Made by a program: the position numbers and the translations under genes. This document shows positions 19,586 to 24,799 of a DNA stretch of 64,000 bases, in pieces (position 1 is the first letter of the stretch; each line of letters opens with the position of its first letter). The notes beneath the pieces were generated by a model, which saw only the letters and a list, made by a program, of their open reading frames with translations, was not told the origin of the DNA and ran no database searches. The stretch is taken from NCBI GenBank assembly GCA_038496445.1, contig JALMLS010000564.1, forward strand, positions 186,001-250,000. The letters are read 5' to 3'. The stretch is from Trichosphaerium sp. ATCC 40318 (taxonomy: Eukaryota; Protista; Tubulinea).

Positions 19586-20387
19586 ATGGGAAAGCAGACA
19601 GGAGTAAGACTTTTCGTTATTCTGCTAGGTGCAGCGCTATGTGTACGTTATTTTACCGCATACCTTCGCTCTCTCGTCCAAAATAGAATGTACCTAATGA
19701 AGAAGTCTTTTTTTTATCACGTGAATCACAAAGTTGGTTCTGCGCCTGTTGTTATTTCTGTTTGTTAGAACGTTTTTATCTAATACTATTTCTAGGGATT
19801 GGGTGTTGTTATTATGGGTCTCGCTTCAAAGCAGAGAGATGGTGCTGAAGTTTGCTGGACGGTTGGAGGCGCCAAACTCTGTGGCGAGGTAAAATCGACA
19901 AAGGCTCAGGCTGGAATTTCTTTACTTGGCTCCATTTTATGTACTTGGTTTTTTTTACAACCTAGCTTTTATCAGCTGTATTAATTATCGCCTAGGTATT
20001 GCTCTTGGCGTATTCACACTGTTAGTGGGTATCTTTAAAATGTTTAAAGGATCTATTATTGCCACAGTACGGAGAAACACCCATTTAAAGAAATAATTTC
20101 TTTCTTTCCTTTTTTTTTTTCAGCAAGGATTTCTTGTTACCTACAACTTTCTTACATTGTTTGAGTAACTTTATATGTAGTGGATTGTCTTCGCCTTCGT
20201 TTCTATGTTCTTTATTTTTGGAGCAGCTGGCGTACAAATGTATAGGTTCGCTTTAACTGATGAGTACAATGGATCAACTGATTGGTTACGTTTTGGATCT
20301 CCTGCAGAAGCAAAAGCAGAATTTGCTGCTTATGTTGTTGTACTTATTGTATCATCTCTCTCAGGCGCATTAATGATCATTGCTTAA
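19586..20387 (+). CDS. Small four-transmembrane protein (claudin/amastin-like topology), function unknown
   Basis: Four hydrophobic segments across 4 exons; first loop has a Cys pair (EVCW...KLCG). Confidence 0.6.
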
Positions 20388-20791
20388 AAAAACCAAAAAA
20401 AAGTGATAAAAATAAACTTCAGATAGAATAAAACAAAATTAACCAAGAGTTGATTAATCCAAATTTTTTTTTCGCTCGCTTTGTTCATTACTGTACAGTG
20501 TTTTAGCAAGTACAAAAAAAGTTATTTACCCGATAGCACATAATAGAAGGTATGGAAATGGTATAGGTCGTGAGTAATTACGAACTAAAAAATGTGATTG
20601 ATAAAGTAACCTCTATCGCCTAAGGAAATCATCCAAAATCAAAAACTTCTTCTGTTTTAACCATACTGTTTTTATAATCGTACCGAAGAAAATAAATGAC
20701 GTAAAACACGTTCGATAGGCTAGTACTGTGCAAGCATAAAATACAATAAACTACAAATCAATTTACTTCACCCACATGTATTCTTTAATTA

Positions 20792-22564
20792 TCAAGAAGT
20801 GGAACCACTCATTTGAAACTTATTGTAAATCAATGTTGATCCATATTTTCTGATATCATCTAAGTTACCACAACCAGCAGTGATCATTGCATTATGAAAT
20901 TCATCCCTTAGTATAGACATCACGGAGTGTGTTCCACGTTCACCATCAACAGAAAGACCCCAAACCATTGGTCTTCCTACAAGTACAGCTGAAGCACCTA
21001 AACATTTCTTAGAAAAAGCACTACCAAAGAACCTCTTTTTTCTCACCTAGAGCCAGCGCTTTGAATACATCTGTACCCCGTCTAATACCACTATCCATAA
21101 TTATTGTCATATTACTACCTTTTACGGCATCCACGATCATTGGAAGAGCTGAGGTAGATGTTAAAAAAACAGTAGTCCACGGTAAAAAAGTAGATAGACA
21201 AAAGGTGTTATTGTATTTACCAGCAATAGTTGGCAAGGTCGAATCCAAGTTTATTCTTCCTCCATGATTCGAAACAATAAGGCCGTCAAGTCCATAAGAG
21301 GCTGCTTTTGCAGCAACTGCAGCTGATACAACTCCTTTCAGAAGAATTTTCATAGACGTCAAAGAACGGAAGTAGCTTATTACAGTTAGTCAAAATTACA
21401 GCTCTGACAACCATTTTTTCAAAAGACTTTGTACCTTATCCTTTCCCAGTTGTATACTCTGTCATGACCTTGAGGGTAAATAACATTCACACCTAAGACG
21501 GAAAATAAGCAATACGATTTGGCACAAAAGTCAATAAAGATACCTAGAGGCAAATCTAGTGTCCAAACAGATGATCCAACAGCTTCTCCTGGCCTATCAA
21601 CGGTCCAAACCAAAGCATCGTAACCTTGCGCTTCAGCAAACTAAGGTAATACCATAAACATAAAGATACCTAAAGGGAACAAATGACAACACCACAAAAG
21701 TAAACCATGGTGACCAGAAAAAACAAATATAAAAGCCATCGCTTACCTTAATTACTTCTTCCATCCTCGTCTTGTTTTTTTGTAAGTATACGTTTAACCA
21801 TAATCCACCAGGAGAATTAACACCTTCATCATGCTCAGCTTTATTATAAGCATCAGCAATAACATCCAAAGGCGTAGTAGTAAAATACGATACAACCATA
21901 GGAACACCAAGTCTTTTAGCAGCTCTTGCAACCTCAACTTCTCCATCTGTACTAAAGCCCTTGAGCCTACCAATAGGTGCATAAAATATAGGGAACGACG
22001 ATTCTTTGCCTACACAGTATTCTTAGATCTTCTCGAGCTTGGTGTCGATTCACACATTTATATAAAATAAACGTGAATACGTACCAAAGATGTTTACTTT
22101 GTACTCTGGTTTGCTTATATTTGTCATTGTACGAGGTATCAAGAAGAGTCTATCAAATGCTTCCGAATTTTGCTTGTATGTCACGTGATCACCTATTTTG
22201 CCCTCCAAATAGTCCCAAGCTGGCAGTGACATTGAGCCTAAACGATAAGAAGTGGGTTTTGAGCTTTGTATTCTCGATTAAGAACAAGGCAATACAGATA
22301 AACGTGTTTACCTTGAGCAGCAACCTTATAGTCATTTACGTCATACAAAGGGACGTAAGGTTCTACAGTTTTAGTGTGGGTTGTTAATACAACAGCCAGA
22401 ACAACAATGATTATAATAGATATAGCTACTACAGCACCTACCTATTTTATAACAGTTAATTGATTGGCGCGTGTCGTCTTACTAACCGAAAGAAATAAGC
22501 GTATTTTCCGTTTGGTTTGAGCAGGCAATAGAGTCTCTGACTCGTTGTCAAGTTCTGTTAACAT
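20792..22564 (-). CDS. FMN-dependent alpha-hydroxy-acid oxidase/dehydrogenase with N-terminal signal anchor
   Basis: AWDYLEG, FYAPIG, WLNVY, WTVD, ILLKG, IVSNHGGR, MDSGIRRGTDVFKALALGA, VGRPMVWGL. Exons 1-2 add MLTELDNESETLLP...VGAVVAISIIIIVVLAVVLTT. Confidence 0.9.
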
Positions 22565-22852
22565 TTATAGGTAAGAGTGAGCTCCAGTTTTGTAAGCAAA
22601 GGACCGTATTTATGACAAAAAGTCACGTGACGTACATCAAAAAAACACTGAGTTCCAAAATGGAACAACCTCAAAAAAAAAAAGAGAAAAGGTGTACAAG
22701 TCGTTGTGATTGAGTTTGCCTTTTTTCTTTTTATTGTTACTATAAACAAAAGGCTAACTTACAAGGGCGGGTTTACAATTGCGAAAAAAAATCGCTTGGG
22801 CTTCTGATATATCCTGGTATTTTTTAATAGTATTTTACATTGTCAGATTTAA

Positions 22853-24204
22853 TTATTGACTGACCTTTCTTATGGTCTTGAGCACCTACAAATAGAAACA
22901 TAAATATTACTTCCACACAATAAACAAGATTTAAATACACATTTTAACAGAGGCACTTGGTAACACGAAGACCAAGTGACCAAAAAACAAAAATTCCAAA
23001 AAAAAAAGAAATTTCAGAAAAAAAATGGAGTTTAACGCACCTGTCGGCTTGATTTATGAATTTTGAATCCATACACGCGAGGCGCATATGAATATTTTGG
23101 AGGAGGTGGAATCAACTCTGGGTAAACCTGCAACATGAGGTGAGGGAAAGATGTCCCGAAATAAGCGCCATCAATTTCTTTAGTAGTCAAGGTATAACAA
23201 AAAGAAGTATCATTCACGCAACCTAGCTTATGCAGCAAGGCAACGCAAGGGAGAAGAATTGAAATTAAAAAAAAATTGAAGAGGATACGACAATGTTTGG
23301 AATACTTTGGGTGAAAGATATCTTCACAGCGTGGACAGTAAAGCTTTAATGTAGAGTTCCTTGGTAGATCAGACTGACCTAGAATTGGATTATTACAAGC
23401 TGAAAAACACAAAAAAGAAAAAAAAAGAAAACTTGTTCCAAAAAATGACTTGTGCATTAAAAGCCTGCTGTAGCCTTAACGTACCCACAGGGAGGACTGG
23501 TTGACCCTCACAAAACACTCTTGGGCATCTAGAGAATAAATTAGATTGAGGGCTACAGAGAGGTAGAAATGTTGGAAGAACAAAACCGAGTCGGTATTCG
23601 AAGATCTCACCTTCCAAAATCAACATTGTTGAACTTTTCTACCATCTGCTCAAGGCCACGTTGTGTGAGCGTATACCTTTGATGAATAAGACCGTATAGC
23701 ATCTCCGCGGAAGATTCAACCATCTCTGCCTGAAATATTGTTAGATACGCTTAAAATGATGCAAAAGAACTGAAAAATGCGCACTTGTTCTTCTGTAAGA
23801 TCCATTTCGGAATCGCGGTCGAGAATCAAGTCAAGTGCGTAGTCGTAATTTGGAACCATCTGAGAGAGGCCATAGAGATTAAAATCATCCTGTTTGAAGC
23901 GAGGTAAGTAAAATGTAGTGAAACGGACAAAATGCTTGGTTCTTTTTTTCTTTTTTGGCTTTGTTTCGCAATTAAATGAATGCACGACGTTCTGTTTGCT
24001 ACAAAAACGAACTAGTTGCAACATTTTTAAAATAAATGTGTTTTTTGGTTTGGAGTAGTGTAGTAAGGTACGTACTTGTATCCACCTATCGTCCACCTCT
24101 ACATAGAACTCGTTGCCCCTCAAACTGCAAAACCATGAAATCCAGCTCGTTTCTTCACTGGAGCTAACCTCTTCGTCGTCTTCTGATATATCTGGTGAAG
24201 ACAT
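22853..24204 (-). CDS. CSNK2B: Casein kinase II regulatory beta subunit
   Basis: [80 protein letters not shown]. Last exon is tentative. Confidence 0.96.
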
Positions 24205-24799
24205 GCTATACTCAGGGCCTGCGGCGATAGTCAATCAAACATTGTAAAAATGGTCGAAATAGTAACACAAACGGCTCTTTTATGTTTCCAGGACACTATA
24301 CGTGACCTTACTAAAATATAAAGTAATTTTATGCGCTACAGGGTTATTACGCAAGATCAGTGCGTATGGTACCGTACATGATCAAAAAGCGTAATAAACA
24401 CCAGCAAAAAGTATCAAATGCTGTGCACGAACGGTATAGTTATCGCAGGCGAGTTAAACGTACCACGTAATAGCTAAGGTTGTACAAGTAATGACTATGT
24501 AGCAAGATTTTGGCTGTAAAAAACTCATTTGACCCTAACGAACCGATGCACTAACAAAACAAGCCACCCTTCCTTTGTTCGGACACTTATAAAACACCGA
24601 GAACAAGCAATATAACTCACGTGTTATTTTTTTGTACACAACCTGTTTTCTGCTTCTTCCAAGCTAAGCGTTACCGCACTCGTCTCTTCTTCCTCTTTTC
24701 AGTGGTTCATTGTTTTCCACGCCGACTGCGCGCCAATACGCGCTTACTCATGAGCCTGCGTTGTAGTATTTCATTGATTTCTCAGCTTTTGTACGCAAG

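Follow-up and report, generated by a model that had tools for sequence, protein, structure and literature searches.

A transcribed FMN-dependent alpha-hydroxy-acid oxidase/dehydrogenase family protein with a predicted N-terminal membrane anchor in Trichosphaerium

Introduction

To our knowledge, and in the literature searched, the eukaryotic members of the FMN-dependent alpha-hydroxy-acid oxidase/dehydrogenase (FMN_dh) family are either soluble peroxisomal oxidases or mitochondrial flavocytochromes. Among eukaryotic FMN-barrel enzymes, class 2 dihydroorotate dehydrogenase (DHODH) and flavocytochrome b2, both mitochondrial, have a hydrophobic segment ahead of the barrel that serves for sorting or anchoring at the N-terminus. 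Many of the family members annotated as oxidases are actually dehydrogenases (PMC9670274).

The gene described here lies in a window of 64,000 nucleotides from Trichosphaerium sp. ATCC 40318 and is a real, transcribed, novel variant within this known enzyme family. An initial annotation of the window presented its product as a membrane-anchored oxidase with a lysosomal-type sorting signal. The accompanying summary of the family, limited to soluble peroxisomal enzymes and mitochondrial cytochrome b2 fusions, omits mandelate dehydrogenase, the membrane-bound L-lactate dehydrogenases and the bacterial relatives that carry twin-arginine (Tat) signals.

Gene structure and expression

The gene occupies positions 22564..20792 on the minus strand and consists of nine exons, separated by introns that are all of the GT-AG type, which together encode a protein of 413 amino acids. 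The features of the locus are as follows:

22565..22626, minus strand: 5' UTR, extent according to transcript contig L001, with no upstream ATG
22487..22564, minus strand: exon 1, aa 1-26, predicted cytosolic tail (aa 1-22), then the initial four residues of the transmembrane (TM) helix
22526..22543, minus strand: ESETLL (aa 8-13), a match to [DE]xxxL[LI] located 9 residues ahead of the helix
22499..22513, minus strand: basic cluster KRKIR (aa 18-22), a positive-inside determinant that abuts the helix
22312..22441, minus strand: exon 2, remaining part of the TM helix (aa 27-45, 22441-22385), linker TTHTKTVEPYVP (aa 46-57) and YDVNDYKVAAQ, with which the FMN_dh domain begins
22085..22237, minus strand: exon 3, N-terminal part of FMN_dh, with Tyr79 (spinach glycolate oxidase, GOX, Y24)
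21747..22009, minus strand: exon 4, FMN_dh, with Gly134, Asn193 and Tyr195 (GOX Y129)
21544..21640, minus strand: exon 5, TVDRPGEAVGSS, with Asp223 (GOX D157), Arg224, Gly230 and Val233
21435..21492, minus strand: exon 6, tail end of the truncated loop 4
21221..21375, minus strand: exon 7, Lys273 (GOX K230), SNHGGR with His297 and Arg300 (GOX H254 and R257), and Ile301
21047..21148, minus strand: exon 8, DSGIRRGTD, FMN phosphate-binding
20792..20997, minus strand: exon 9, last barrel strand and C-terminal helices, ending in FQMSGSTS followed by TGA
20747..20791, minus strand: 3' UTR, extent according to L001

All eight splice joints, including the one between exons 1 and 2 (intron 22442-22486), are seen in spliced contigs from sequencing runs of three studies (X1, X2 and X4/X5); these contigs extend 28 nt 5' of the ATG. 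In addition, a JGI transcript contig of 1350 nt (L001) spans 22626..20747 and includes the whole coding sequence. The start codon is directly abutted by an in-frame TAA (22567-22565, minus strand), and the anchor and the beginning of the barrel are encoded in the same exon (exon 2), with no in-frame Met. The two 5' exons that had been proposed to encode a tail with ESETLL and KRKIR and a hydrophobic anchor are both present in the spliced contigs and in L001, which confirms this part of the prediction, with a helix of 23 residues, and the exon boundaries given for them are correct save for the end of exon 2, which is at 22312 rather than 22311, a difference of one base. A transcription start on the 3' side of the TM exon is not what the transcripts show, as they carry exons 1 and 2. 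An erroneous gene model, or a TM exon that lies outside the mRNA, is likewise excluded by the joints from the three studies together with the full-length transcript contig.

A public gene prediction (P0001) is identical to the derived model apart from one residue, K396E. All Logan contigs end at 20862, 70 nt short of the stop codon; K396E, which maps to 20848, lies close to this end point without coinciding with it, and L001 crosses 20862 with K396E as the only difference. Among the sequenced strains, the gene shows six synonymous and three non-synonymous differences, and exon 1 is identical in all of them. The gene is under purifying selection, as indicated by the mostly synonymous differences between strains.

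The catalytic domain

The assignment to the FMN-dependent oxidase/dehydrogenase family made in the initial annotation is borne out by the PF01070 (FMN_dh) profile, to which five exons each score above the gathering threshold, jointly covering profile positions 6-345 of 350; P0001 carries the same assignment as a precomputed one. In an AlphaFold2 model (pLDDT 88.4), the protein folds into a (beta/alpha)8 barrel that can be superposed on that of glycolate oxidase. Foldseek aligns the model with spinach GOX, human HAO1, mandelate oxidase and rat LCHAO at target-normalised TM-scores of 0.83-0.93, with E-values of about 1e-32 for 1GOX, HAO1 and mandelate oxidase. A sequence search of the PDB with the whole protein yields matches to HAO1 and GOX down to E 1e-57 at 32-35% identity; exon 4 alone, which is very divergent, finds no match in the PDB at E<=0.001.

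The flavin-binding and catalytic core of the protein is intact, the carboxylate-binding arginine is lost and the lid loop is shortened. In spinach GOX numbering, we take the seven active-site residues to be Y24, Y129, D157, R164, K230, H254 and R257. A set of seven such conserved residues is described for the family (PMC8491902, for the count only). Six of these seven are retained (Tyr79, Tyr195, Asp223, Lys273, His297 and Arg300), as are all FMN phosphate- and ribityl-binding positions, and the signature SNHGGR (aa 295-300) had correctly been reported as intact. The alteration noted in the arginine-containing loop is also real: in TVDRPGEAVGSS (aa 221-232), the R164 column is occupied by Gly230, compared with Arg in 69 of the 74 aligned relatives. 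In GOX, R164 has been called invariant (PMC10153336). Its acidic partner, a conserved Asp/Glu equivalent to GOX Asp167, is replaced by Val233. Two further substitutions affect the positions of GOX Gln127 (Asn193; Gln in 74 of 74 relatives) and Ala79 (Gly134; Ala in 69 of 74). Arg224 is found in no aligned relative, and Ile301 is a one-residue insertion next to Arg300 that is peculiar to the anchored protein. The lid loop (loop 4) comprises 32 residues compared with a median of 54 and is the shortest among the 75 aligned sequences. Altogether, there are 15 deviations at columns that are at least 90% conserved, compared with a median of 2 in the relatives.

H2O2-forming oxidase activity, as proposed initially, is uncertain judging by the sequence: the changes R164 to Gly, of its partner to Val, Gln127 to Asn and Ala79 to Gly, as well as the truncation of loop 4, all cast doubt on it. 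Of ten family members that were inactive in a published screen, eight were missing one of the seven conserved residues (PMC8491902).

Relatives in sequence databases

A search of 5.8 billion protein clusters detected no relative above about 43% identity; with the whole protein as the query in a word-index search, the best local BLASTP identity is at most 40%, and identity in the MAFFT alignment reaches up to 43%. Residues 1-130 matched only the protein itself. A HMMER search with exon 4 gave 17 matches; only the product of this gene itself scores strongly, and there is no ortholog or close paralog among them. No relative was found in JGI metagenome contigs with six peptide patterns, and the N-terminal anchor is present in none of the 135 relatives fetched. 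In the ESM Atlas, both features and fold lead only to ordinary FMN_dh clusters, and the structural matches all begin at residue 49-56.

Seven bacterial homologs possess Tat signal peptides. In the phylogenetic tree, the Trichosphaerium protein is placed, weakly (SH-aLRT 93), inside a bacterial clade with Tat homologs, on a branch about 7 times longer than the median. The gene neighborhoods of two of these Tat-signal relatives offer no clue to function, and the literature searched for transmembrane, signal-anchored or periplasmic family members yielded nothing relevant.

Membrane anchor and orientation

The protein begins with MLTELDNESETLLPAQTKRKIR, followed by the hydrophobic stretch LFLSVGAVVAISIIIIVVLAVVL. 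The uninterrupted hydrophobic run comprises 23 residues (L23-L45), with a maximum Kyte-Doolittle 19-mer score of 3.35, compared with 1.5 for the next most hydrophobic segment of the protein, and is covered by a single helix (residues 15-46) in the AlphaFold2 model. The net charge is +2 in the 15 residues before the helix and -1 in the 15 residues after it, so that the type II (N-in/C-out) orientation suggested earlier is favoured by the flanking charges; with the orientation read from the positive-inside rule, the tail is taken to be cytosolic and the barrel would be luminal or extracellular.

The endolysosomal address proposed for the protein finds nothing in its support beyond the single ESETLL match: among 100,000 shuffled versions of the 22-residue tail, 11% contain such a motif. 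The [DE]xxxL[LI] match does not exceed chance, and no ortholog or paralog that might share it was retrieved. The first 16 residues include four acidic and no basic ones. Peroxisomal targeting signals are not apparent at either end of the protein: the C-terminus (MSGSTS) contains no PTS1, in agreement with the absence of SKL recorded previously, and there is no PTS2 (R[LI]x5HL) near the N-terminus.

Possible functions

On balance, though not by much, it appears probable that this transcribed gene encodes a rapidly evolving FMN_dh family member, specific to its lineage, that has acquired a signal anchor and kept its core, and whose barrel faces the lumen or the cell exterior. The helix would be captured by SRP, delivered to the ER and inserted N-in/C-out; such type II insertion would therefore expose the flavin barrel, probably a tetramer, to the lumen or the exterior at a membrane of the secretory or endocytic system, tethered about 12 residues from the bilayer. 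An alpha-hydroxy compound most likely would still be oxidised via His297 and FMN. Given the missing arginine and the more accessible active site, a classical small 2-hydroxy acid held in the customary way is an improbable substrate. O2, reduced to H2O2, would be the obvious candidate electron acceptor in such a compartment. The seven bacterial homologs with Tat signals indicate that extracytoplasmic relatives exist, which is consistent with this scenario; however, the 15 deviant conserved positions and the long branch are also expected of a decaying or re-purposed protein. A true TM anchor combined with a probable luminal or extracellular location raises the question of how FMN is loaded in the secretory pathway, and we know of no FMN-dependent TIM-barrel enzyme that acquires FMN within the ER lumen. 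The exported bacterial relatives sidestep this step by using Tat, which transports proteins folded with the cofactor, and this in itself hints at a cofactor-loading problem outside the cytoplasm.

Several other explanations have to be considered against this background. Given the loss of Arg (GOX R164) and its acidic partner, Q127N, A79G, the insertion by Arg300 and the shortest loop 4, along with the 15 deviations and the very long branch, the protein could be a catalytically impaired, re-purposed one, that is, a pseudoenzyme or a membrane protein that binds flavin or some ligand. Such a role seems unlikely considering that six core residues are retained, together with every position that binds the FMN phosphate or ribityl group, and that the differences among strains are mostly synonymous. 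Furthermore, the entry for PDB 6a3t, as far as its record goes, describes mandelate oxidase R163L crystallised with an amide substrate analogue, suggesting that loss of this arginine can alter specificity without abolishing binding. It is quite unlikely that the protein is a mitochondrial inner-membrane dehydrogenase, anchored like class 2 DHODH or sorted like flavocytochrome b2, with the barrel in the intermembrane space and with quinone or cytochrome c, in place of O2, as the electron acceptor. The sorting of DHODH and cytochrome b2 is the only well-precedented eukaryotic route known to us for an FMN TIM barrel behind a hydrophobic N-terminal segment, and FMN is available in mitochondria. 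The dehydrogenase character of the membrane-bound family members (PMC9670274) and the Gly at the GOX Ala79 position point in the same direction. Nevertheless, the acidic, base-free start of the protein is unlike a matrix-targeting presequence, the extremely hydrophobic helix (3.35, 23 residues) favours SRP/ER capture, and the heme domain is absent.

The type II endolysosomal or phagosomal oxidase envisaged in the initial annotation, sorted by adaptor protein (AP) complexes via ESETLL and converting prey hydroxy acids into luminal H2O2 for NADPH-oxidase-independent killing or digestion, appears very unlikely. The favoured orientation fits it, and so does the location of the [DE]xxxL[LI] match 9 residues from the membrane, a spacing that is reportedly, in the compilation of Bonifacino and Traub, within the range typical of lysosomal dileucine signals. 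Against it stand the frequency of the motif in shuffled tails and the lack of orthologs in which to assess its conservation, as well as the absence of the carboxylate-binding Arg, changes at three more near-invariant flavin or active-site positions, and Gly at the GOX Ala79 position, as in mandelate dehydrogenase. Family members without one of the seven residues are mostly inactive as oxidases (PMC8491902), and homology is no predictor of O2 reactivity (PMC9670274). The hydrophobic segment could also be a cleaved signal peptide (processed, for example, after T47-H48-T49), in which case the enzyme would be soluble and luminal or secreted, and the tail motifs would be irrelevant; this we consider highly improbable. 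Signal-peptide h-regions typically consist of 7-15 residues, and the 22-residue n-region and 23-residue core found here are far longer, a pattern typical of signal anchors. Small residues do occupy the -3 and -1 positions (T-H-T|K) right behind the hydrophobic run, and a fungal secretome table (PMC9505667) includes one FMN_dh protein among the extracellular ones.

Returning to the signal-anchored enzyme with an extracytoplasmic barrel, its boldest version, which must be regarded as decidedly far-fetched, would have H2O2 generated independently of NADPH oxidase at the luminal face of the phagosome or lysosome or at the cell surface, from hydroxy acids of prey or algae such as glycolate and lactate, perhaps by a formerly Tat-exported bacterial periplasmic enzyme whose signal was swapped for a eukaryotic signal anchor. 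A phagosomal H2O2 generator, if real, would be a new kind of oxidative weapon in protist phagocytosis; a pseudoenzyme would exemplify the recruitment of a metabolic barrel as a membrane protein. The loss of the carboxylate-binding arginine raises the question of the substrate. Under either reading, this is a single lineage-specific gene, and therefore its wider impact is modest for now.

Relation to described flavoenzymes

The peroxisomal enzymes GOX (1GOX) and HAO1 are the best matches of the anchored protein, with which they share the FMN TIM barrel (target-normalised TM-scores 0.89-0.93, 32-35% identity) and the equivalents of Tyr24, Tyr129, Asp157, Lys230, His254 and Arg257. It differs from them by the added N-terminal tail and TM helix, the lack of PTS1 (the protein ends in STS), the replacement of Arg164 by Gly, of the Asp167 equivalent by Val, of Gln127 by Asn and of Ala79 by Gly, and a loop 4 of 32 residues (median 54).

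Bacterial (S)-mandelate dehydrogenase and the membrane-bound L-lactate dehydrogenases belong to the same family and, like the Trichosphaerium protein, are membrane-attached; G81 of mandelate dehydrogenase corresponds to the GOX Ala79 position. These dehydrogenases bind the membrane monotopically via a long insertion in loop 4 (PMC8491902, citing the mandelate dehydrogenase structure). The anchored protein, in contrast, has the shortest loop 4, and its anchor is an N-terminal TM helix. The Tat-signal homologs (P0023, P0027, P0047, P0057, P0066 and P0073) are the nearest ones by tree path length, at 38-39% identity, and are predicted to be extracytoplasmic, but they carry a cleavable twin-arginine signal rather than a eukaryotic signal anchor and, unlike the anchored protein, retain the Arg and have a loop 4 that is normal.

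Flavocytochrome b2 is a member of the same family, as indicated by the PDB sequence match; compared with this enzyme and DHODH, the anchored protein lacks a cytochrome b5 domain, its N-terminus is acidic instead of basic, and its helix is far more hydrophobic. Finally, L-amino-acid oxidases such as IL4I1 are luminal or secreted flavoenzymes of the secretory/lysosomal pathway that produce H2O2. These would be functional analogues of an endolysosomal oxidase but differ in fold and in cofactor (FAD, GR2 family) and are not homologous to the protein described here.

Gene structure and expression

The gene consists of a 1242-nt reading frame (413 codons) assembled from nine minus-strand exons, all with canonical GT-AG borders.

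Exons of the GT-AG gene model (window coordinates)
22564-22487, minus, exon 1
22441-22312, minus, exon 2
22237-22085, minus, exon 3
22009-21747, minus, exon 4
21640-21544, minus, exon 5
21492-21435, minus, exon 6
21375-21221, minus, exon 7
21148-21047, minus, exon 8
20997-20792, minus, exon 9

The exon coordinates of the initial annotation are correct overall, except for the end of exon 2, which was one base off. The N-terminus of the protein is MLTELDNESETLLPAQTKRKIR, and the 23-residue hydrophobic run directly following the N-terminal tail is LFLSVGAVVAISIIIIVVLAVVL; the best 19-residue window of this run has a Kyte-Doolittle mean of 3.35, whereas the rest of the protein reaches 1.5 at most. 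The helix is followed by a 12-residue linker and then by the FMN_dh domain, which opens with YDVNDYKVAAQ; anchor and first conserved barrel element are therefore both encoded in exon 2, which lacks an internal Met. The protein ends in FQMSGSTS.

Contigs from four public sequencing runs (X1, X2, X4 and X5; three studies), aligned to window 20600-22800, omit exactly the eight predicted introns, including the one between exons 1 and 2 (22442-22486), and a 1200-nt contig extends to 22592, 28 nt upstream of the ATG. A whole-library protein search identified a public 413-aa gene prediction (P0001) that equals the exon model with one substitution. Its source, the 1350-nt JGI transcript contig L001, aligns to 22626..20747 with all introns spliced out, a 62-nt 5' UTR and a complete 3' end of the coding sequence. 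The N-terminus is well defined because an in-frame TAA directly precedes the ATG and the UTR contains no other ATG. The gene is expressed as modelled: the run contigs, L001 and the in-frame TAA place the transmembrane exon in the mRNA and rule out a transcription start downstream of it.

The runs and L001 differ at six synonymous and three non-synonymous positions. The latter are Y55N in the linker that joins helix and barrel (T for A at 22357, common to X2, X4 and X5), K208R in X1 and K396E in L001; all remaining differences are synonymous. Random changes would, as we estimate, be non-synonymous in about three quarters of cases, so these counts point to purifying selection. The Logan contigs of X1, X4 and X5 (two studies) all stop at 20862, 70 nt before the stop codon. 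L001 runs past this point unchanged to 20747, and the K396E site (20848) is near the break, not at it; the shared end is possibly an allelic bubble.

The palindrome TCACGTGA is present in 13 copies in the window, compared with 0.74 expected from shuffles; one copy (22623-22630) coincides exactly with the 5' end of the transcript contig, another (22181-22188) is within exon 3, and 11 are elsewhere. ORF fragments at 23032-24234, minus strand, resemble the casein kinase II beta subunit (one piece is PRVYGFKIH) and would represent the neighbouring gene on the upstream side, some 400-470 nt away from the 5' end of the oxidase-like transcript. Short hydrophobic ORFs at 19926-20431, plus strand (e.g., MFFIFGAAGVQMYRF…VVVLIVSSLSGALMIIA), are oriented towards the 3' end of the gene and possibly form exons of a gene for a small membrane protein.

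Family, fold and relatives

Five of the exons match Pfam FMN_dh (PF01070) above the gathering score. By sequence, the best solved relatives are human HAO1, rat HAO2/3, and spinach and tobacco glycolate oxidases, along with 4-hydroxymandelate oxidase, mandelate dehydrogenase, lactate monooxygenase and flavocytochrome b2. The AlphaFold2 model built from a 75-sequence alignment (mean pLDDT 88.4) contains a single long helix (15-46) and a confident barrel, only the tail and loop 4 being of low confidence. Foldseek matches it to spinach glycolate oxidase (GOX), human HAO1, mandelate oxidase and rat long-chain hydroxy-acid oxidase (target-normalised TM-scores 0.83-0.93, identity 32-35%).

A word search of 5.8 billion clusters with the full protein yielded no relative above 40% local identity. 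The best matches are bacterial alpha-hydroxy-acid oxidases (named 4-hydroxymandelate oxidase in the source; Angelobacter, Cystobacter, Simplicispira), and plant glycolate oxidases reach 33-34% at most. All 135 relatives retrieved lack a hydrophobic helix at the N-terminus (Kyte-Doolittle maximum 1.6 in the first 90 residues), residues 1-130 alone match nothing besides the protein itself, a scan of metagenome contigs found no relative, and all ESM-Atlas fold matches start at residues 49-56.

Seven bacterial relatives (P0006, P0023, P0027, P0047, P0057, P0066 and P0073) open with twin-arginine motifs (RRxxL plus a hydrophobic stretch) and are accordingly predicted to leave the cytoplasm in the folded state, which makes a periplasmic location of these alpha-hydroxy-acid oxidase-like enzymes probable. 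No paper describing these Tat-signal proteins was found, and the gene neighbourhoods of two of them (e.g., L002, with a metallo-beta-lactamase fold protein, a periplasmic binding protein and a TonB-type receptor) give no clear functional hint. In a quick maximum-likelihood tree, the amoeba protein, with a very long branch of 1.94 (median 0.27), falls within a bacterial clade holding six Tat-signal proteins, apart from plant GOX. Because the SH-aLRT support of this placement is only 93, with warnings on long branches and amino-acid composition, a bacterial origin of the gene is regarded only as possible.

Predicted topology and location

The membrane anchor proposed in the initial annotation is borne out by the hydrophobic run in the transcribed N-terminus. 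The 15 residues before the helix, with KRKIR adjacent to it, carry a charge of +2 and the 15 after it -1; by the positive-inside (charge-difference) rule, the tail would be cytosolic and the barrel translocated, which makes the proposed type II orientation probable. So long and hydrophobic a segment suggests SRP/ER targeting and makes a cleaved signal peptide, with the cut after T49, the less likely alternative. The protein contains neither PTS1 nor PTS2; its barrel has one Cys and three N-x-S/T sequons (N109, N199, N324), by rough estimate no more than expected by chance.

How a barrel in the lumen would obtain its cofactor is the chief problem: to our knowledge, no FMN enzyme with a TIM barrel is loaded in the ER lumen, and those bacterial relatives that are exported go through Tat. 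This problem keeps alive a location in the mitochondrial intermembrane space, for which flavocytochrome b2 and the N-terminally anchored class 2 dihydroorotate dehydrogenase are precedents; however, four acidic and no basic residues among the first 16 speak against a mitochondrial presequence. The lysosomal address previously read from the tail motif ESETLL is unsupported: the motif, 9 residues from the helix, fits [DE]xxxL[LI], but the tail is rich in Glu, Asp and Leu, and 11% of its shuffled versions contain such a match. Phagocytosis is plausible biology for an amoeba, yet nothing in the analysis ties the protein to phagosomes or H2O2, so the suggested peroxide production likewise lacks support, and a phagosomal or lysosomal role in H2O2 killing appears improbable.

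Active site

A scripted comparison of the protein with 74 relatives (75-sequence alignment) indicates that the FMN-binding positions are kept, as are Tyr79, Tyr195, Asp223, Lys273, His297 and Arg300 (GOX Y24, Y129, D157, K230, H254 and R257). Other positions differ.

Active-site differences from the 74 relatives
230 (GOX R164): Gly; Arg in 69/74
233 (GOX D167): Val; Asp/Glu in 62/74
193 (GOX Q127): Asn; Gln in 74/74
134 (GOX A79): Gly; Ala in 69/74
224 (directly after the catalytic Asp): Arg; Arg in 0/74
301 (directly after GOX R257): inserted Ile; gap in 74/74
Loop 4: 32 residues, the shortest; median 54

Among columns at least 90% conserved, the protein deviates at 15, compared with a median of 2 for the other sequences. 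Judged from this alignment, the active site has undergone remodelling and should not be called simply intact. R164 (Fcb2 R289, human GOX R167) contacts the ligand carboxylate and has been termed invariant (PMC10153336). Of 24 family members screened in one study, 14 were active, 12 of them with all seven conserved residues; among the 10 inactive ones, 8 had lost at least one (PMC8491902). Moreover, O2 reactivity is limited to particular clades, many 'oxidases' being dehydrogenases (PMC9670274). Thus, the catalytic SNHGGR motif is intact as initially annotated, but, given the residue changes and these three published points, there is no good ground for naming the protein an oxidase that acts on ordinary hydroxy acids. 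One lead is PDB entry 6a3t, by its title the R163L variant of mandelate oxidase in complex with a 2-hydroxy amide, which hints that loss of the Arg equivalent to GOX R164 can shift specificity to non-carboxylate substrates; the unique Arg224 might partly stand in for the missing Arg.

Altogether, the gene is a lineage-specific, expressed variant of a well-known enzyme family, new in both its architecture and its active site.
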